From Epithemia pelagica (lineage: Eukaryota; Protista; Bacillariophyta): DNA of 64,000 nt. Of the stretch, positions 28,922 to 39,545 are shown piece after piece. The stretch is from the NCBI GenBank assembly GCA_946965045.2, contig OX337232.1, positions 1,488,001 to 1,552,000 of the forward strand, written 5' to 3'. The position numbers were made by a program, and so were the translations under genes. The notes under the pieces were generated by a model. The model was not told the DNA's origin. It ran no database searches and worked only from the letters and a program-made list of their open reading frames with translations. The number at the start of each line of letters is the position of its first letter. Position 1 is the stretch's first letter.

Positions 28922-31900
28922 ATGAAGGTTACCCAACGGCACATGACCGTTTGGTTTCTTTTGCTTCCTCTCTGCGCAACGGGAGAACCAATATCTAATC
29001 CCTACATCCCTTTTCGAACTTCACCGTTTGACCAAAGTGGATTTATTCATCACGAAATCACATTTCCCCCTGAACACAAACGAAGCAAAATCTTCCACAG
29101 CGGATCGACCAAACATGATCACTGTCCACTTCATTTTTCTCTTGGTATTAGCAAGCGGTGGCATGAAAATCTCGAAGGACCGGCCATTAACAATCCACCT
29201 ATAATCCGCACAGTCTTTCCAGCAGCTGGTCCTGGAAAACAAGTTGTATACTTGACGCAGTACGAGCATTTGGATTTGCTGTCGCCTGCCTTTTACGAAC
29301 ACAAAGAGGGACGAGCAGTGCAAGAAGCGCTCTTGCAAGCACCTCAGTTTCCACTACTTTGGGAATCAAGTTCATTTCATGGGTCCCCCGTTCTCCACGA
29401 TGTGAATGGAGACGGAATCATGGATGTCATTGTTGCAGGTACGTACTCATGTTTGGGATCGAACACTATGTAATATTGGAGTAAAAGCCAGCTAACTCGA
29501 GTTTTGACCATTTCTGACGTTTGTGTTTGACTTAGATTATGATGGAGGCATATCCATCATGGCATTGGCACAGGAACCAGGCAAAAGTCGCTACTTTCAT
29601 CATTTTCAAGTACCACGTCTATACGTTCGTCGGAATTGGATTGAAAGCAGGATCATGAAAGAAGTGAATGGAACCCAGACGGAAGCTGATGATTCACATA
29701 GAGATCCCTACCATTCGTACTTTGAGTACTACTCTTCCGATAACAATGAAGAGCATATTCTACGCGGTGTCGCTGCGAATGTCCTGGATCAGGACGAGTC
29801 GTCCGCAAAATCACTTCAGGAGAGAAGAGGTCGCAGGGTGTCTCATTTGGACGATGTCAAACCTGTAATCGAAGAACACAAAAAGAATAATGAAGAAGAA
29901 AATAATGCAGATGAGCCTGCTACTGGTAGCTTCCTGTCCCAAGCCAAAACTGAAGAAGAAAAGATTCGCCAAGCAGAGTTTGCCGAAGAACTGAAACGTA
30001 GACATCAAGAAGAGCAGGCCAGCGAAAATCAAGAAAACCGTCATCAAGATAAACAACGGGAGCAGTTGCTTGATCAGAGACAAAAGCTGGAGAAACAAAT
30101 GCATTTGGGGACTGAAGCAGACAAGTCTCAACAAGCAAATCTTATGGAAGAGCTCAAACGCCGACAAGAGGAAGAGCTTGCCGTTGAAACTACGGACCAT
30201 ACCCATCAAGATGAACAGCGAAAGGAATTGTTAAATTTAGAAGAGCATAAACATGTGACGACTCAAGCCGATAAGGTTCAACAAGCAGAACTTGCTGAAG
30301 AACTCAAGCACAGACAAGCAGAGGAACTTGCCGTTGAAACTACCGATTACATTCTTCATGAGGAGCAGCGAGAGAAATTGCTCGGTCCAGATCAGCACAA
30401 ACATGTGACGGCCGAAGCCGATAAACTTCAACAAACAGAACTAACTGAAGAACTTAAGCACAGAAAGGAAGAGGAGCTTACGCTTGAGAAAAAGGAACAC
30501 GCGCATCAAGAGGAACAACGAGAGGAATTGCTGGATCTAGATAAGCACAGACATGCCACGACCGAAGCCGATAAAGTTCAACAAACAGAACTTACTAAAG
30601 AACTCAAGCACAGACATGAAGAGGATCTTGCGATTGAGAACAAGGAACACGCGCACCAAGAGGAGAAGAGAGAGGAATTGATAGATCTCGATGAGCACAA
30701 ACATGTGACGACCGAAGCAGATAAAGTTCAACAAACAGAATTCACTGAAGAACTAAAGCACAGAAAGGAAGAGGAGCGAGCGATTGAGAACAAGGAACAC
30801 GCTCACCAAGAGGAGAAGAGAGAGGAATTGATAGATCTAGATGAGCACAAACATGTGACGACCGAAGCAGATAAGGTTCAACAAACGGAATTCACTGAAG
30901 AACTAAAGCACAGAAAGGAAGAGGAGCGTGCGATTGAGAACAAGGAACATGCGCACCAAGATGAGAAGCGAAAGGAGCTACTCGATGTGGAGCAGAACAT
31001 CTCTCCCGCCGATGACCTTCGCAGTCAACTGGAGCGTGCCCTTGCGAATACCGAAGCGAGCGACCACACCCGTTATCAGGAAAACGAGCCACTGAAACTC
31101 ACTGAGAATCAGGTTTTGACACGAGAAAACGAGGCACACATCCACAATGATCAGGAGCTCGGAGAAGCGGAAATGACACACCGCCGTTTGGAAGAGCTCA
31201 TCGGGACAGATGACATGCAGTATATCGACGATGGATTACTGACGAAAGGTACTGCTGATGACATGTTTCCTGATACAGACGATGGAATTGATTCTGAGGG
31301 AATGGATTTGGGGAAAACAGGAAAAGAAGACGATGAATTGCCTCCGCCGTATTTAGATGATGACGCGAATTACGGACGTGAACGAGTAAGTCCTTTTTTC
31401 AATGGGTATTTTTTTGAATTTTCCCATCATGTTCTCAACATCTATTCTGCTGGTCTCTTAGTATGATGACGATTATCGAAGGTACACTGGTTATGATGAC
31501 TACTATGGTGACTATCGTAAGTGTTGACGGATATGAAGCTACATGAGATTGGTCCGATTCTAATGTTTGCTTGCTCTACCAGATCACGATGACTACTATG
31601 ATGACAAACATTATATTCGAATCCCTCCTCATGTTCTGACTACACCTGTCCTCGTTGAGATGCCGCGTCTATATGGGAATAACGAGATTGATGAGCTTCT
31701 CTTGGTCGCTGCCACCTACTATTTTGATGAAGATGAGTACGAAGGCCGGTTTTCTTACAAACGGTTCAGTGGTAGTGACCATGGAGACGAAACCGAACTG
31801 AAGCGTGGCATGTACGTTGCCAGCGCCATACTAGCCTACAACCTCGAGCATGGTGGTCGATGGTCTTCACAGACCCATTTGGAACTAAGCACAGACTTTT

Positions 31901-33381
31901 CGTCCCCAGAGAATGCTACTCTTGTGGGGACAATCCCGATCAAGGCAGACATTACTGAAATGGGGGCTTTTGCGCTGGCTAGTCCAACGGTTGCTGACAT
32001 TGATGGTGACGGGACTCTCGATGTCCTGCTTGGCACCTCGATGGGTCTTTTGTACGCATTGGATTGTAGAAATCTTTTCAAGAAAGAGAATTGGCCCATT
32101 CAGATGAAGAACCCAATCGAATCTCGCCCGCTAGTCGAAGACGTGGTGGGCGACACAAATCTTGAGGTGTTCGTTGTTGATATTGGTGGCATCGTGGCGT
32201 GTTATTCGCACGAAGGAAAGCTCATCTGGAGCCGGGATATTCTAAGCTCACTAGGCTTTGGTAAATCCATAACTGGAGCAAGCCCTATGTCCCTCGGAGA
32301 CGTTGATGGTGACGGATACCTTGATCTTGTAATGACGGTGGAAGTTAACGGTCGATGGCTGGTTCTTGCGTTTCAGGCAGCAAGCGGCAATGACTTGAAA
32401 AACTTTCCAATTGAGCTTGAAAAGCTACGGAAGGCCGGAAAATTCAAGAACAGGGAGAGTGATGAAAAGAAAGAACGCACACGCCTAGCGCAACCCTTGT
32501 TGGTGGATCTTCATGCCGACCAACATTATATTCTCGATTACATTCGGCGTGGTTCCCAAGCTTTCAGACGAGAAGTCGACATCGCACCAAGCGAATACCC
32601 GCAAGGAGGGTCTTCTGCTGGGATCCACATCGTGCAACCTATGGAAAAGCAATTGTACATTGTAGAGGGTGGATCTGGTTGTACACAAAAGGTTGTGATA
32701 GGTGAAGAAATAGGCACCATGGTTGGAGTTGATGACATCCACGGAACGAACCATTTGGACCTTCTTGTTGCTACCAAGGAGGGAAATATTGTAACACTTG
32801 AATCGTCTGCGAACTATCATCCGCTTAACACGTGGACCGGGGGAGATGTACGAGGGAAAAACTCTCATACTCATGGGTACAGCGCATCACAAGGCATATT
32901 CGTCCACGAGGTTAGTCGACAGTACAAAGACATATTTGGTGTCTATGTCCCAGTCACTTTCGAAGTATTCGACAACCGTCCAAACATCGATCAGGAACCG
33001 GGGAAACGGATATACAAAATTGAAGTTCGAGATGGGTCGTCCTCACAACGGACTCTTCATAGAGTTGAAGTCCAGCAACCTGGAGTGTACACGGAGCGCA
33101 TTTATGTTCGATTCGGCCCGGGATATTATAATCTCTGTGTTCTTATGAGTACCTCTCATGGCATTACGTACGAGGACTGCTTTGCGACAGGATACAACGT
33201 ACATTTTATGGCTGGATTTGGAGTAATGCTGTGGCTTCCACTGTTGGTTTCTTTTGTCACAATTCTGTTGTGCGGTGTCAGTAAGAAGGGGAATTGGGAC
33301 GACGAAGACGGTGCCGAGGACGAACAAGAGAGCCGTGACAACCGCAGTCTTGGCATCTTGGGTAGAGCACTTCCTACCTAA
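28922..33381 (+). CDS. DEX1-like FG-GAP/integrin-alpha beta-propeller type-I membrane protein; exons 28922-29438, 29536-31385, 31462-31516, 31583-33381
   Basis: Signal peptide; Ca-binding loops DVNGDGIMD, DIDGDGTLD and DVDGDGYLD; C-terminal TM helix. All three GT-AG introns keep the frame. Confidence 0.82.
29949..30990 (+). repeat. Coding tandem repeat, about 7 copies of a 150-bp (50-aa) unit
   Basis: Unit starts at 30111, 30261, 30411, 30561, 30711 and 30861, plus a degenerate copy at 29949. Consensus TTEADKVQQTELTEELKHRKEEELAIENKEHAHQEEKREELIDLDEHKHV. Confidence 0.92.
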
Positions 33382-33513
33382 TTTCGTCCTACTTTAGTCA
33401 TGTCATTGAATGTGATGTCTAGAGAGCTATCCTACCCTTGAGATCTGGGGTAGAGCATACTTCCTGTCATCCAGATCAGAATGTGACGTCTAGAGAGTTA
33501 TCCTACCCTTGAG
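33356..33513. repeat. Degenerate tandem duplication spanning the stop codons of two convergent genes
   Basis: GTGAYGTCTAGAGAGYTATCCTACCCTTGAG occurs at about 33412 and 33483. GGGTAGAGCA(TA)CTTCCT occurs at about 33360 and 33448. Confidence 0.75.
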
Positions 33514-36500
33514 CTTCGCGGTGTTCGACAGCTCTACTCTTTGTGCCTTACCTTTTTCAACGAGATCAGGTAAGCTATTTGACCGAGCAGATACAGTACC
33601 AGACTGGCGCCAGAGAGTGATGTGCGTAAACTTGTTGAACGAAGCCGGTAGAGACGTGCCTTCATCGGTAGTTTTCGGAAGTTCCACCTCCAATGCAGCG
33701 GTTTTCCCATCCCACAGAACTGCACGAACTATGACTTCTGCTCCATGGCCTTCGACTTCTCCATACTTGAGTCGCATCTCGTCCTGCGAAGCACTTACTT
33801 TGTGAACCAATGTCACGTGAGTTTTCAAGACGAACTTTTTGTCCACGCAAAGACTTCCAACTAGGACATCATTGGCAGAATTTTTTCCTGTGATTTTTTT
33901 CCACAAACTTTCTAGTCTCCAATCATCGACATTCTTGAGTAGAAGATTGTGGACATCGTCGACGGATACGTCAACTGAAACGTAGTCAATCATTCTGGTA
34001 GCTTTCTTTTTCAGGTCTTCTTGGAATGGTTTGTCGTCGACATGATCAAAGATTTCACCTTGATCAGCTAGTTCCACCACTTTCTTCACCTTGTCCAGAA
34101 AAGCCTGCTGGGACACTTCCACACCAACTGTCAAGGAATTCAAATACGTTTGGTTTTCCTCCAGAGAAGTCCGTAGCCTTGACTCAAGATCGTCGAGATA
34201 CTCATCTTTTTCTTTTCCCACATCTTTGAAGCCATTTCGAGCTTGAATGGCTTCGACAAGGATATTCTTCAAATCAGTAGGAATGTCGACTTCATCGGAT
34301 CGGAAGAAAGGACTCTCGAAGAAAGGAATCTCAATTGGCTCTCGAGCGATAAATGCTCCAGCATTTTCGAACTTCTCAGATAGAGTAGCCAAGAATTCAT
34401 CAGCTGTTACTCTTTCGTACAAGCAATAAAACATGACGACGATCATGCAAGCACGTTTATGCGACTGGTCCAGCTTTCCTGGGTGTGAATTGGGCGGTCG
34501 GGACATTACTCGGAGCATACATACGGCCAGATAAGTCAGACTGAAGGGGTATCGGTACGTCCTGTCCATACAGATCTCACCATCCCTCTTTCGGAAACCT
34601 TGAACTACCGTAGTAGACAGTGCATGCTCCGGTATTGCTGGGACACCCACCGACGACGTGTCGGCGCATATCCCGGAAAGTGCATCCCAAGTGCCCGACG
34701 GCACGTTCTTATCGGCTATGTAGAGACTTGAAATGTCTTGGCGTTTTTCCTTTGTCACTACTTGCCAGTATTTTCCTGGTGTCTTGTCACCCATTCTTAC
34801 TTTGAGGTTTCTCCTGGGCTCTGTTCTCTTAGATAAAAACTCGTGTAGATTCAGCTCCGCCGATTCATCTATGAGACTCGACTTTCCGCATCCAGGAATC
34901 TGAGGGAAGAATACAAGTATCCCTATTGCAGAAGCAATGTCGTCCAGGTCATCGGTTTTCGAAAATTGCATTATGGGTTTGAGCAAAGTCTCGGTATCTT
35001 TCTTGGAATCTTCGTCTATCTCCATCGCATCGTTACTTAGAATCGCAGCCAAAGGCAAGTCGACTTTCACAGAGGCCGCATTCTTCCTCCATCCATTCAG
35101 ACGATTGAAAACGTTGTCCACCTTGTCCTCTCCGACAACTGATAAAATTTCATCCCATTCACAACCATAGTAGACAATGGCAGTTTTATCGTCAAGACGA
35201 CCTTTCAGGATATTTCGGTATCGACCAGAAGAGTCTTCTAAGCAAACGGAACATACCGCTCCTTCCGTGGTCCCATTAGGAACTGCACTCAGTCCATCAT
35301 AACGAATTTTACATCCCACTTGTTTGGCAACATAATCAGCCGCAGTTTTGGCAGTGTCTTCATCAGGTCCTACTACCACCACAAATCCATTGAAGGAGTC
35401 TCCCGATCGCTCGATTTTACCAGCGTCGTACAGCTCGATGAATTGTTCCAAATGCTCGAGGTAGTTGTCCTGACTCAAGGGTTGCAGTCCTGCGTCTCGT
35501 CTTCGTGAGTACTTCGACAACCGTGGCGCTGCATAGTCTGCCCACGCTCGGAAGAATGGCATCCATGTTTTGCGTGCTTCGGACGACATTTTCCACTTGG
35601 TTAACAGATTGCTCGTGTATTTGACAAACCCCTCACTCCCTCCTTGTTTCAAGTGTTTGAGTCCGTTGCGACATCCAAAGGTTCGCACCATATACGGCAA
35701 AAATTTCATTTTCAACATGAGACCTTTCTCTTCATCCAAGTCGGACATGAATGTTGTTTGATTGTGAGACAATTCGTTTGCGGAGAATTCGTCATCCGCG
35801 GAGAGTTCCAATGCAAATCCTCGAAAGAGGGCCATATCACCAGGACGCACACTTTTGCGATATTTCGAATGGGCATGGTCCAAAATTACATGAATGATAC
35901 AGAGCCATCTCGAGAAGCCATAATTTGTTATTTCTTCCCGTACAATCGAATAATCAACACGGATATTCAGTCGATCCAAGTCCTCAATGACTTGAGCAAT
36001 CCGTCGAGTCTCGACATCGTCGGAATCCCGCAATTTCCGAAGGACGGATGCCACATGTTTGGTTGCCGATTTGGACATTCGTACACCAATGCGGCGGTCC
36101 GGTGTCTCCAAGAGCTGTTTTACTTTGGATGCAAAAGAATTAGGCGCCTCGTCGTTAGTCGTGGATTGCGTTTGAGCAAAAATGGTTCGAAGGTCGGTCG
36201 ACAAGCATTTTGGCAACTTCTTTCCGTAATGACATGCTGTAATCAACTCAAAACAATCGGGTAAACTGGATGGAACCTTTGTGGAACACAGATCGTCTGC
36301 GACCCTCGCCAAGGACGCCATGTCGCGATTGATCTCATTCTCATCCATAGTTTCCTTGCTGTTTTCGGGATGGGGGACGTATCGAATGACAATGCCTTCC
36401 AGGATATCGCCCTGGAATTCGGTATGAGGATAGAGACTCCGCACTCGTGTTTCCGCTGCCTTTGTCAAGGTGTGTTCGACAAAGGAAGCCAAACTGGTTT

Positions 36501-38268
36501 CACGGCAATGGTCGTAAAACTCAAACAATGCCTTTGTGCTTTGGGGAGACGTGAACTGCCAAAAATCATTGTGCGGCAATCGAAACCGTTGCGCCAAGGC
36601 GACGACTTGTGCCGTCGAGTAAAATTGTTCCCGAGTTCGATCGGCCACAGCGGTCAAGATTAAAAAGTCACGCTTTGGCTTGTCGCCATGATCACCCAAG
36701 ACAGCCGTCACTACCTCAAAGGCCAAGGTCAATCGTTGCGACTCGACAAAGTCACTGCATTCGTGATAGTGTGCTTCAGCTTGCCAGTCAAGTTTCATGT
36801 TCGTATCCCCTTCCGTGTCTTTGCTGTCGTCCTGATCATTCCAAAATGCTCGAATAAAGTGTTGTCGAAGCAGAATTTCTCCCACATGGGTGAACTTATT
36901 GTCCATGGAATTCTTACTGTAGTAGCGCTGTCCTCCACTCCACAACAAGAGGGATCCAGAGTGTTTCAAACTAACTTCCAAATACCCGTCTCCCTGTTGA
37001 ACTTTTTCTTGCATGGCCATTCGAATCTTTTTGTCTCCTTCATTGTCAAATTTGGGATGAAAAATGGCCTCCAACCGAATTCGTGTGGTGTCGGCCAAGG
37101 ATGGTGGGGATGCTGTCGCTACTCTAGCCGCGTGAGATTCTTGGGTTTCGTTATTCCCATTGCCAGTCATTGTTTTAATGCTTCGTTTGGCATGTGATAC
37201 CAATTGGTCCATGCTTCGCTTGCGCGAAGATCCACTGGACAAGGAAGCAGAAGATGTTGTGGTTTCTTTCTCATCCTTTCCAGTGTTGGTGAAAGTTTCA
37301 CAATCAATGGATTGTGCCTCGAGTTGTTCTCTTACTTCGCTCGTTTGCCGAGAAATGGATACTGTCCCATCGATGGGTGCTTCTGCCATGTTCTGGTTGG
37401 CATCTTCTTCTTGTTGATACCGTTCCATGGCTTGTTGGGCCAATTGTCGACGAATGTTTCGTGCGGCTTGATTGCGATTTTGAATGTCCATTTGGTGTAG
37501 TTGCTCTTCTTCCAACCGATGCATGGTTTGACACGCCGTTTGAATAGCCTGCCACGTTTCGGGATCAATGGACGTTGTCGACGTTTCACCCGATTGAAAG
37601 ATGCGATCAATGCGTGATTTGCGATCCCACAAGATATCATCCGCCTGCACTGCAGGCAGAGATGCAGTACTACTAGTTGGTCCAACTTGCCGTCGAAAGT
37701 ATTGAATGCGATGTTCTGGAATGTCTCCTCCTCCTCCTACAGCATTGTCTCCCACACGGACAAAATCAGACACAAAAGTCTCCATTGGTCCATGAATGCG
37801 ATCGTCGTACCCAATAATGATTTGATTGGGATCGTACATGGTCGAATCGTATTTCAAGCGATTTAATACATCGTGCGATGTTCGCAAGGAGGGGCGTGAC
37901 TCTGATTCGTCATCCTCGGCATGCCGTCGTGCGTGGTGCTTTTTCTTGGTGGACGACGCCTTTTTCTTTCGAGGATTTGGTGACATGGAGGACCTGAATG
38001 ACTCTTGCGCAAACAACAAAAGAGGGAAATAGGAAAATTGGCGTCCAACAACAGAGGAGCGAGGGAAACCGGAATAAGTAAGGGACCCCAAAGACGGTTT
38101 CCTAGTAGATAATGAGAAGGGAACCAAAGTCAGGGTATCCACAGCCTTGGTCAGTCTATGGGACTTGGAAACCAACGAACGCGAAGGACCACTACGAATA
38201 AAGGCAGACGTTTGTGCAGCAGTAGTGAGGAAGGAAACCTGCACCCACGTGAGGATGGCCGCTCTCAT
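33490..38268 (-). CDS. RNL: Plant-type tRNA/RNA ligase (ligase + polynucleotide kinase + cyclic phosphodiesterase) with an N-terminal MJ1316/DUF504-like domain
   Basis: Ligase motifs SLKHSGSL, FEVVTAVLGDHG and LKMKFLPYMVRTF. Kinase motifs FFPQIPGCGKS, IADKN and LRVMSR...HPGKLD. Phosphodiesterase HVTL and HITL. MJ1316-like DVLNRLKYD...IGYDDR...DIPEHRIQYF...ILWDRKSRID. Confidence 0.88.
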   Translation of the reverse strand: MRAAILTWVQVSFLTTAAQTSAFIRSGPSRSLVSKSHRLTKAVDTLTLVPFSLSTRKPSLGSLTYSGFPRSSVVGRQFSYFPLLLFAQESFRSSMSPNPRKKKASSTKKKHHARRHAEDDESESRPSLRTSHDVLNRLKYDSTMYDPNQIIIGYDDRIHGPMETFVSDFVRVGDNAVGGGGDIPEHRIQYFRRQVGPTSSTASLPAVQADDILWDRKSRIDRIFQSGETSTTSIDPETWQAIQTACQTMHRLEEEQLHQMDIQNRNQAARNIRRQLAQQAMERYQQEEDANQNMAEAPIDGTVSISRQTSEVREQLEAQSIDCETFTNTGKDEKETTTSSASLSSGSSRKRSMDQLVSHAKRSIKTMTGNGNNETQESHAARVATASPPSLADTTRIRLEAIFHPKFDNEGDKKIRMAMQEKVQQGDGYLEVSLKHSGSLLLWSGGQRYYSKNSMDNKFTHVGEILLRQHFIRAFWNDQDDSKDTEGDTNMKLDWQAEAHYHECSDFVESQRLTLAFEVVTAVLGDHGDKPKRDFLILTAVADRTREQFYSTAQVVALAQRFRLPHNDFWQFTSPQSTKALFEFYDHCRETSLASFVEHTLTKAAETRVRSLYPHTEFQGDILEGIVIRYVPHPENSKETMDENEINRDMASLARVADDLCSTKVPSSLPDCFELITACHYGKKLPKCLSTDLRTIFAQTQSTTNDEAPNSFASKVKQLLETPDRRIGVRMSKSATKHVASVLRKLRDSDDVETRRIAQVIEDLDRLNIRVDYSIVREEITNYGFSRWLCIIHVILDHAHSKYRKSVRPGDMALFRGFALELSADDEFSANELSHNQTTFMSDLDEEKGLMLKMKFLPYMVRTFGCRNGLKHLKQGGSEGFVKYTSNLLTKWKMSSEARKTWMPFFRAWADYAAPRLSKYSRRRDAGLQPLSQDNYLEHLEQFIELYDAGKIERSGDSFNGFVVVVGPDEDTAKTAADYVAKQVGCKIRYDGLSAVPNGTTEGAVCSVCLEDSSGRYRNILKGRLDDKTAIVYYGCEWDEILSVVGEDKVDNVFNRLNGWRKNAASVKVDLPLAAILSNDAMEIDEDSKKDTETLLKPIMQFSKTDDLDDIASAIGILVFFPQIPGCGKSSLIDESAELNLHEFLSKRTEPRRNLKVRMGDKTPGKYWQVVTKEKRQDISSLYIADKNVPSGTWDALSGICADTSSVGVPAIPEHALSTTVVQGFRKRDGEICMDRTYRYPFSLTYLAVCMLRVMSRPPNSHPGKLDQSHKRACMIVVMFYCLYERVTADEFLATLSEKFENAGAFIAREPIEIPFFESPFFRSDEVDIPTDLKNILVEAIQARNGFKDVGKEKDEYLDDLESRLRTSLEENQTYLNSLTVGVEVSQQAFLDKVKKVVELADQGEIFDHVDDKPFQEDLKKKATRMIDYVSVDVSVDDVHNLLLKNVDDWRLESLWKKITGKNSANDVLVGSLCVDKKFVLKTHVTLVHKVSASQDEMRLKYGEVEGHGAEVIVRAVLWDGKTAALEVELPKTTDEGTSLPASFNKFTHITLWRQSGTVSARSNSLPDLVEKGKAQRVELSNTAKLKGRITL

Positions 38269-38606
38269 TTAATCCTCTTGGTTGTGTCTGGTCCTCAGAC
38301 CTCAGACCTCAGACCTGCACCACACTGGCCGGCAGTGCCCGAGAAATTGTGAGAGCGTCGATGTCGCGAAAGATACACCAAATCGATCTTCGTGGCGAGG
38401 AATCGGCAAAAATTGCAACCACTGGGAGATGGGGTAATCCTGAGCAGGTCGCTACCTTACCAGTCAGATACTGACTGTGACCTATAGGAGTTACCGAACG
38501 CTTTTTCTGAATAAAGAACACTCTAGCGACAAAAGATGATATACTGACTGCTAGTACTATTATAACCCACCACCACCCGGTTCATAACCGCTACATATTT
38601 GTACTG

Positions 38607-39545
38607 CTAGTCATCTTCCACTTCGATCTGAAACACTTTCGCCTCACCATTTTCAATCTTCATCTGAACCAGATTCACCACTGCTCCAAACACCTTGTGA
38701 TGCCCATCCAGATCTCCTCTGTATTTCTCCTTTAAGATATTGTAATGTTTCAGTAAATTGTTGACAGTTTCATGTCTCGCCCTGGCATCTGCCATCATCT
38801 TGTCTTGATAGTCATTTCTTCCAGTAGGTGTGACAAAGTAGCATCCAGAATCGTTGTAACCACCATCAGCAATCACTTTCTCATTCGGTAGTAGCTCTTG
38901 AACAAGCCAGTCTCTGGCAATCCGTAGGTCTGGCCGAGCGCCACAAGGGAATGCACCATTCCACCACACTATCCAGCCAGTTTTCAGGCAGATTCCCACC
39001 TCATACCTCACACCTGCTCCCTTAAACTTGTGTGAGTACCATTTTGGATCAAAAGGTGACGGCTCCAAAATCCTGAAGTCAGTACCATCCAAACTAATGA
39101 AACAGACCTGTCCAGGTACACAACAATCAAACCTATTGTCCCATACAATCTGTAATAAGAACAACAGCAATGGTCAGATATGAGGAGGACGACTTCATGG
39201 CAAATTCATGTAGGGCCATGTACTTACATAATGAAGACCACTATACAACAAATCTACAAACACTTTGACCCACTTCCTGAAGGTCTTCCTTGTTGTTTTG
39301 GCTATTGAGACCATAACATCCTCTGTAGCATAGACTTTCAGAAAAGCCAGTGTCCACAACAAATGACGAGGCGATGCACCTTTGGGCAATGAACTGTCAA
39401 GTTCATCCCACACATGAACACAGAGCAAAGGAGACATTCCAAAGTAAGAGCAAAAAGCACGTGAGAAATCAAGTGAATGTGAGTGTCTTGCTCTACCAAG
39501 CATTGGCAGAGCCAAGTTAATGAATGTTCGTTGTGTCACCAACAT
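38607..39545 (-). CDS. Harbinger/ISL2EU-like DDE transposase; exons 39545-39228 and 39149-38607 (286 aa)
   Basis: Catalytic triad in ISLDGTD, IADGGY and RHETVN; WYSHKFKG. A phase-0 GT-AG intron at 39227-39150 joins the helical N-domain. Confidence 0.88.

Follow-up and report, generated by a model that had tools for sequence, protein, structure and literature searches.

Does the diatom Epithemia pelagica carry a tRNA ligase with its own built-in reader of broken RNA ends? The question is raised by a locus on contig OX337232.1, within a stretch of 64,000 nt that we refer to as the window (coordinates are positions in it, and amino-acid numbers are those of the window protein). Here a single open reading frame (ORF) on the minus strand had been described in a first-pass annotation, made from the letters alone, as an MJ1316-like end-recognition domain fused to a plant-type ligase, kinase and 2H phosphodiesterase. 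Pfam matches, motifs and structural models place all four modules in this one ORF. We consider it likely that the window holds a single genuine raphid pennate diatom gene, orthologous to plant-type RNL, which gained an N-terminal module of ~170 aa (MJ1316 plus a helix) in an Amphora-related ancestor, and that this module is an accessory for cyclic-phosphate ends. The parts of the gene are as follows.

33490-38268, minus strand: complete ORF (1592 aa and stop) of the MJ1316-fused plant-type tRNA/RNA ligase; no internal stop; orthologous uninterrupted ORFs at L001 (1611 aa) and L002 (1591 aa).
37987-38268, minus strand: aa 1-94, presequence-like extension by its sequence, with a putative function; two-methionine layout also in P0002 and P0004.
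37564-37905, minus strand: aa 122-235, globular MJ1316 module (Pfam, alignment, AlphaFold, ESM Atlas shape search), with the motifs IPEHRI..YFRR (aa 183-193) and LWDR..R.DR.F (aa 213-224).
37687-37884, minus strand: aa 129-194, Pfam MJ1316 core (PF04457 match).
37384-37563, minus strand: aa 236-295, single long helix, part of the conserved module (residues 142-201 of the AlphaFold model).
37084-37383, minus strand: aa 296-395, low-complexity linker with a conserved RKR..(D/E)(E/Q)(L/I) patch at aa 349-356 (sequence, alignment).
35569-37083, minus strand: aa 396-900, RNA ligase (adenylyltransferase) domain with its C-terminal helical part (alignment, AlphaFold, structural matches, BLASTP); K435 in KHSG at nt 36952-36966, EG in LEGIVIR at nt 36382-36402, KxK in LKMKF at nt 35701-35715.
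34969-35421, minus strand: aa ~950-1100, diatom-conserved insert between ligase and kinase (alignment of homologues, BLASTP to plant RNL).
34219-34941, minus strand: aa ~1110-1350, P-loop polynucleotide kinase; GCGKSS at nt 34876-34893; D1161, D1186-K1187-N1188, R1253 and R1257 invariant.
33544-34023, minus strand: aa 1416-1575, 2H cyclic phosphodiesterase (PF08302); HxT motifs at nt 33808-33819 and 33613-33624.

The N-terminal domain is a member of the MJ1316 family, both by profile and by predicted fold. In a scan of the whole protein, the Pfam hidden Markov model PF04457 matched aa 129-194 with 42 bits (E 1.5e-10), above its curated cut-off of 26.3 and within the interval of about 37600-37900 that the first-pass annotation had assigned to an MJ1316-like domain. 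When the N-terminal part was scanned alone, the score was 44-45 bits (E down to 1.5e-11). The match covers model positions 2-68 of 75. The AlphaFold (AF2) model of aa 95-310, with a mean pLDDT of 84 and values above 90 in the core, consisted of a small helix-plus-strands domain followed by a 60-residue helix (aa 236-295) predicted with high confidence. A shape search of the ESM Atlas with this module returned ten nearest models, and all ten lay in clusters in which 95-100% of the members carry PF04457 (root-mean-square deviation 1.8-1.9 Å over 74 residues for three of the matches; TM score by query 0.32-0.45). The partner domains in those ten clusters were PAP (poly(A) polymerase), 2H/AKAP7 with CCCH (LENG9 type) or EEP, with no ligase among them, and a cluster look-up returned no cluster of at least 50 members joining PF04457 with tRNA-ligase domains.

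The conserved unit is longer than the Pfam model of 75 positions. Alignment with the MJ1316-EEP-2H-PAP proteins introduced below gave a shared unit of ~170 aa composed of MJ1316 and the helix, and the start of the helix is conserved between the window protein and that family. Thirteen columns of the module alignment were invariant, and all 13 are kept in the window protein, including G-Y, G-P-x-E, H-R-I-x-Y-x-R and W-D-R. The region after the MJ1316 domain had been described as a coiled linker. It is indeed helical at aa 236-295, but this is one long helix belonging to the conserved module, followed by ~100 low-complexity residues. In the structure search this helix matched generic coiled coils only.

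An exhaustive HMMER search with aa 95-800 as the query, for which the best 150 of 495 matches were inspected, brought out the relatives of the module. Among the matches listed, many besides the diatom ligases aligned to aa 122-295 only. Scanning 18 of these proteins located MJ1316 in the N-terminal region of every one and an EEP phosphoesterase in 17, and the full-length members, of ~1200 aa, additionally carry a LigT-type 2H domain and a PAP-type nucleotidyltransferase. Named members came from the diatoms Odontella, Corethron and Ditylum. The window module and these N-termini share 33-45% identity, the same range as among the ligase-fused orthologues. Among the matches listed, then, the nearest relatives of the module by sequence are the N-termini of diatom MJ1316-EEP-2H-poly(A)-polymerase proteins, and a protein of this kind was the likely donor. 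The window protein itself has no Pfam match to Exo_endo_phos or PAP_central and is therefore not a member of that family, with which it has only the N-terminal module in common. One family member, P0271 from Ditylum brightwellii (1373 aa), carries AAA_33/AAA_18 P-loop kinase domains in addition, making it a five-module RNA-end enzyme.

What the module does can be approached from the company it keeps. MJ1316 as a reader of 2',3'-cyclic-phosphate ends is a computational prediction (PMC6514570, citing Burroughs & Aravind 2016), and the known fusions of MJ1316 include various eukaryotic RNA-repair domains (PMC6514570). The literature that we searched on MJ1316, DUF504, PF04457 and LENG9 yielded no experiment on function or ligand. 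The module might instead be functional without reading RNA ends, as an oligomerisation, localisation or partner-docking device common to RNL and the MJ1316-EEP-2H-PAP proteins. Consistent with such a role, the conserved unit includes a 60-residue helix matching coiled coils only, the same MJ1316-plus-helix unit heads two different diatom enzymes, and that literature offered no experimentally established ligand. We nevertheless regard a docking role as unlikely. In eukaryotes and bacteria MJ1316 occurs almost only with the RNA-end-modifying domains PAP, 2H, EEP and CCCH (as judged from the ESM Atlas clusters and PMC6514570), so that recognition of a substrate fits better than generic docking, and the invariant His, Arg, Trp and Tyr would suit nucleotide or phosphate binding. 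The fusion with an RNL fits an end reader as well, since the substrate of the first healing step is a cyclic-phosphate end.

The rest of the protein has all the sequence features that define a plant-type RNL, and we assign it to that family on this basis. Residues 396-1592 are colinear with aa 169-1159 of a land-plant RNL (P0170, Rhynchospora pubera 'RNA ligase isoform 1'; BLASTP E 4e-56 and 6e-37); the lysine block EVSLKHSGSL is identical in the two proteins, and conservation extends to the P-loop and both HxT motifs. The exhaustive HMMER search also recovered plant and green-algal RNLs, and a language-model look-up with the whole protein returned tRNA-ligase clusters only. Every ligase, kinase and 2H motif reported earlier as intact could be located (KHSGS 435-439, LEGIVIR 623-629, LKMKF 852-856, GCGKSS 1126-1131, HVTL 1484-1487, HITL 1549-1552), and the catalytic residues of the three domains showed no variation across 34 aligned diatom homologues. 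These residues comprise K435 (KHSG), E518, E624-G625 and K853/K855 of the ligase, the G, G, K and S of the P-loop GCGKSS together with D1161 in the kinase, and H1484, T1486 and H1549 of the 2H domain.

The Pfam ligase model RNA_lig_T4_1 scored below its cut-off on the window protein (23.4 bits vs 28.3), but it did match 6 of the 34 homologues at E <=0.001. The ligase domain was instead confirmed through the AlphaFold model and the BLASTP match to plant RNL. The model of aa 395-900 (mean pLDDT 89.5) had fungal Trl1-LIG as its top structural matches (Z 13.8-13.9, 232-237 residues aligned, 19-20% identity), with T4 Rnl1 next (Z about 12). The kinase is colinear with the plant RNL kinase region, with no match to Pfam tRNA_lig_kinase in the window protein. 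At aa 1416-1575, PF08302 (tRNA_lig_CPD; cut-off 23 bits) matched the 2H domain with 30.7-37 bits. PDB chains, fungal ones included, were searched by sequence and by profile with no relevant match for any domain; the plant and diatom ligases are, as judged by these comparisons, far in sequence from the fungal ones.

Two observations concern the diatom RNLs in general. The insert of ~140 aa between ligase and kinase contains an F.G.VVVV ... G.G.VC block that is kept among diatom RNLs; it has no counterpart in the alignment with plant RNL and no Pfam match. About one-third of the diatom homologues (P0020, P0023, P0034, P0038, P0066, P0086, P0109 and others) are ~1000 aa long; they end near query residue 1342, with no CPD in the alignment. 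A separate CPD-less paralogue was considered and rejected, as the tree places these proteins in among full-length orthologues; more probably the gene models are truncated, or an intron separates the last part of the gene from the rest.

The distribution of the fusion proved narrow. A search for PF04457 among the 120 closest homologues, the named ones of which are all diatoms, found the module in five, which fall in one clade: P0001 (98% identity), P0002 (57%), P0004 (50%), P0008 (44%) and P0009 (42%). No other protein with both module and ligase was present among the best 150 of 495 HMMER matches. The fused proteins came only from ENA, JGI and Logan assemblies; none from NCBI or UniRef sources was seen among the homologues found. 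The plant, green-algal and other distant RNLs that were scanned had no MJ1316, nor had most diatom RNLs, which bears out the earlier statement that plant RNL comprises the catalytic modules only and indicates that the fusion is not the norm in diatoms.

In the maximum-likelihood tree of the RNL core, all fused proteins fell into one clade of 10 rows (SH-aLRT 99), the sole named member of which is Amphora coffeaeformis. In the tree of the module, the five ligase-borne modules grouped together and their inner topology was that of the core tree. This fits, at the level of sequence, one fusion event in the ancestor of a small Amphora-related clade. Four rows of the clade, P0007, P0003, P0005 and P0006, have no module in their gene models. 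That of P0007 is cut by a contig end. P0003 lies on a contig of 3968 nt, barely longer than the gene, which starts after the MJ1316 position and has an in-frame stop just upstream; we take this contig for a transcript. In P0006 (locus L004), 591 nt of upstream sequence contain, at L004:330-377, a decayed IPEHRI..R relic with stops in it. The relic precedes RLEAIF by 460 nt, compared with 459 nt in the fused P0008, and its score of 60 was not reached in any of 300 shuffles (maximum 40). Its collinear position indicates a secondary loss, with the module having decayed in at least one sister lineage. For P0010, just outside the clade, 5 kb of sequence upstream of the gene show no MJ1316 module. 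From the core and module trees, the P0006 relic and P0010, we conclude that there was one gain of the module and at least one loss by decay.

We then have to ask whether module and ligase are one gene and one transcript. The frame continues without a stop from the module through the helix and the ~100 low-complexity residues, and it is likewise open in L001 and L002 from other assemblies. The fused ORF is uninterrupted at 98% amino-acid identity in L002, at 57% in L001 and at 50-42% in P0004, P0008 and P0009; rather than pointing to a separate transcript for the module, the five orthologues, diverged to 42% identity, all show the same unbroken frame. Contigs of the DNA runs X1-X3 tile the region with no joints; each covers a part and consecutive ones overlap, although a hole at one break could still be present. 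Nothing was found in favour of an assembly or gene-model artefact that fused two adjacent genes. With these overlapping contigs, which allow for that one possible hole, and the same ORF in independent assemblies, we regard such an artefact as next to negligible.

Run X4 differs from the DNA runs. It has an adapter-bounded contig, 35003-38335, that bridges MJ1316 and ligase and ends 67 nt upstream of the first ATG. Immediately upstream of 38335, where a repeat takes the DNA runs to depths in the thousands, the depth of X4 drops ~60-fold, and X4 matches a transcriptome in total contig size. The contig carries a 3-nt deletion typical of the second genomic copy described below. From the depth and the adapter-bounded contigs, we believe that X4 is probably RNA-derived. 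If so, the contig is suggestive of one transcript that begins 5' of the first ATG and takes in both MJ1316 and ligase.

A second copy of the gene lies at L002:5904-12167, with 98.7% identity to window 32099-38375 over 6.3 kb only. Its product, P0001 (1591 aa), carries a Leu in place of the Pro858 shared by the window copy and all 33 other aligned homologues. The similarity ends on both sides, and the second copy looks like a recent segmental duplication; the other allele was considered and rejected, as the similarity stops on both sides after 6.3 kb. Within the module, the ratio of nonsynonymous to synonymous substitution rates (dN/dS) between the two copies was 0.32, and the module also holds the most amino-acid differences per length between them. 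This density of differences, together with the decay of the module in the P0006 lineage, would be expected if the MJ1316 region were a decaying passenger with no function in this genome. We consider this very improbable: the invariant columns are all intact, the module is predicted with high AlphaFold confidence, there is no stop or frameshift, its dN/dS is 0.32 and it is conserved in five lineages.

Ahead of the module, aa 1-94 have a hydrophobic start, an A-x-A|F-like site at aa 19-23 (TSA|F), a composition rich in S, T, R and L and only two acidic residues. A second methionine, M95 (37984-37986), stands directly before a Lys-rich stretch and the MJ1316 module. The same layout of signal-like start and second methionine occurs in P0002 and P0004. 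This extension looks like a diatom bipartite (signal-plus-transit) presequence.

Several points weigh against a single end-reading four-module enzyme. No solved structure matched the MJ1316 module in Foldseek, and a wide VIA search was dominated by the long helix. To our knowledge, the ligand of MJ1316 has never been measured. Support for the single grouping of the ligase-borne modules was only moderate (80/45), and the module donor is proposed from relationships that lack a rooting. Over the whole of the near-identical copies dN/dS was 0.46, a value based on 53 changes and of little power. At least one sister lineage has lost the module, which makes it accessory rather than essential. None of the runs that hold the locus is recorded as RNA, and neither the existence of a single transcript nor the position of its ends can be proved from contigs. 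Finally, the internal methionines M353 and M367 are located where unfused orthologues start, so a shorter, three-module isoform may also be made.

This last point leads to an alternative with two products, in which an internal promoter or start near aa 353 gives an ordinary three-module RNL as the main form and the MJ1316 form is minor or condition-specific, for example organelle-targeted. The unfused orthologues start 50-120 aa before RLEAIFHPKF, and the linker patch RKR..(D/E)(E/Q)(L/I), here at aa 349-356, is also found near their N-termini. The P0003 contig, begun past the MJ1316 position below an in-frame stop, would represent such a form. Plant RNL, moreover, has been reported to use alternative initiation, with two starts for chloroplast and nuclear forms and thereby dual targeting (PMC4090602). 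On the other side, ~400 codons upstream of the ligase stay open in five diverged orthologues, with the invariant residues of the module kept, and the X4 contig is unbroken from upstream of M1 into the ligase. That the three-module product is the main one thus seems to us a minority reading, about as improbable as the docking role; a shorter form would be compatible with a genuine four-module gene, as an additional isoform.

Beyond the gene, a remnant of a Harbinger/PIF-type DDE_Tnp_4 transposase occupies window 38420-39545 directly upstream, ~150 nt from the first ATG. Over this region the depth of the DNA runs is in the thousands, as for a high-copy repeat, with boundaries at ~38417-38429. 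The convergent neighbour at 31567-33381 on the plus strand encodes a DEX1-like protein that combines FG-GAP repeats with a DEX1 beta-sandwich; the 3' ends of this gene and the ligase gene are crossed by an X4 contig.

How would the four modules act together? In the RNL/Trl1 pathway, healing consists of opening the cyclic phosphate (CPD) and phosphorylating the 5'-OH (kinase), and the break is sealed by way of the adenylylated lysine. By analogy, the 2H domain of the window protein would first open the 2',3'-cyclic phosphate to a 3'-OH/2'-phosphate end, the P-loop kinase would next phosphorylate the 5'-OH, and the ligase, adenylylated at K435, would then seal the ends. The MJ1316 module may be a tethered accessory that binds the cyclic-phosphate (or 2'/3'-phosphate) RNA end, and its binding could raise the local concentration of the enzyme at breaks, namely at tRNA exon halves and possibly other cleaved RNAs. 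We infer here the MJ1316 ligand, the substrates of the enzyme and its compartment. A more speculative extension, which we hold to be doubtful and somewhat less probable than either the docking or the two-product alternative, is that MJ1316 plus helix forms a common 'broken-end address tag'. RNL (rejoining), EEP-2H-PAP (healing/tailing) and GGQ rescue would then be arms of a triage of cleaved RNA, maybe partly in the plastid through the presequence isoform, with the helix mediating competition or pairing between the arms.

With plant RNL (AtRNL type, P0170) the window protein has in common the ligase-kinase-CPD order, the colinear core, the EVSLKHSGSL block, the P-loop and both HxT motifs, and possibly a two-start N-terminus as reported for AtTrl1 (PMC4090602). 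Unlike plant and green-algal RNLs, the diatom enzyme has MJ1316; it also has the extra ~140-aa ligase-kinase insert, and its putative presequence looks to be of the signal-plus-transit type rather than a plant transit peptide. Fungal Trl1 resembles it in the three activities (predicted here), the domain order and the ligase fold, and the Pfam CPD model that matches was built on fungal enzymes; Trl1, however, has no MJ1316, and similarity to PDB chains was undetectable by sequence, even with profiles.

The diatom MJ1316-EEP-2H-PAP proteins (Odontella aurita A0A7S4MSL2, Corethron pennatum; P0186, P0228) share with it the N-terminal ~170-aa module with the same invariant residues and the presence of a 2H domain, and both enzymes are predicted to act on RNA ends. 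In contrast to the window protein, they have EEP, a LigT-type 2H and a PAP-type nucleotidyltransferase after the module and no ligase or kinase, and their predicted outcome is end healing and tailing, not rejoining. The chordate LENG9-type proteins (CCCH + MJ1316 + AKAP7-like 2H) and fungal MJ1316-PAP proteins likewise join MJ1316 to RNA-end enzymes and were among the shape matches of the module, but with other partners and neither ligase nor kinase. The literature we searched, which did not extend to Burroughs & Aravind 2016, held no record of a fusion of MJ1316 with a tRNA ligase.

The label of MJ1316 as an 'RNA cyclic group end recognition domain' rests purely on comparative genomics. Here the domain is joined to the only eukaryotic enzyme that by definition takes a 2',3'-cyclic-phosphate end as its first substrate, and P0010, which never had the module, and P0006, which lost it, offer a natural with/without-module comparison for a biochemical test of the prediction. 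The usual view of the tRNA ligase is that of a three-module enzyme that stays the same from fungi to plants, yet one diatom lineage shows that it can acquire accessory modules and lose them again. The occurrence of the module on both ligases and EEP-2H-PAP proteins suggests that a single end-recognition module is used repeatedly in diatoms, on several enzymes of RNA repair and RNA rescue.

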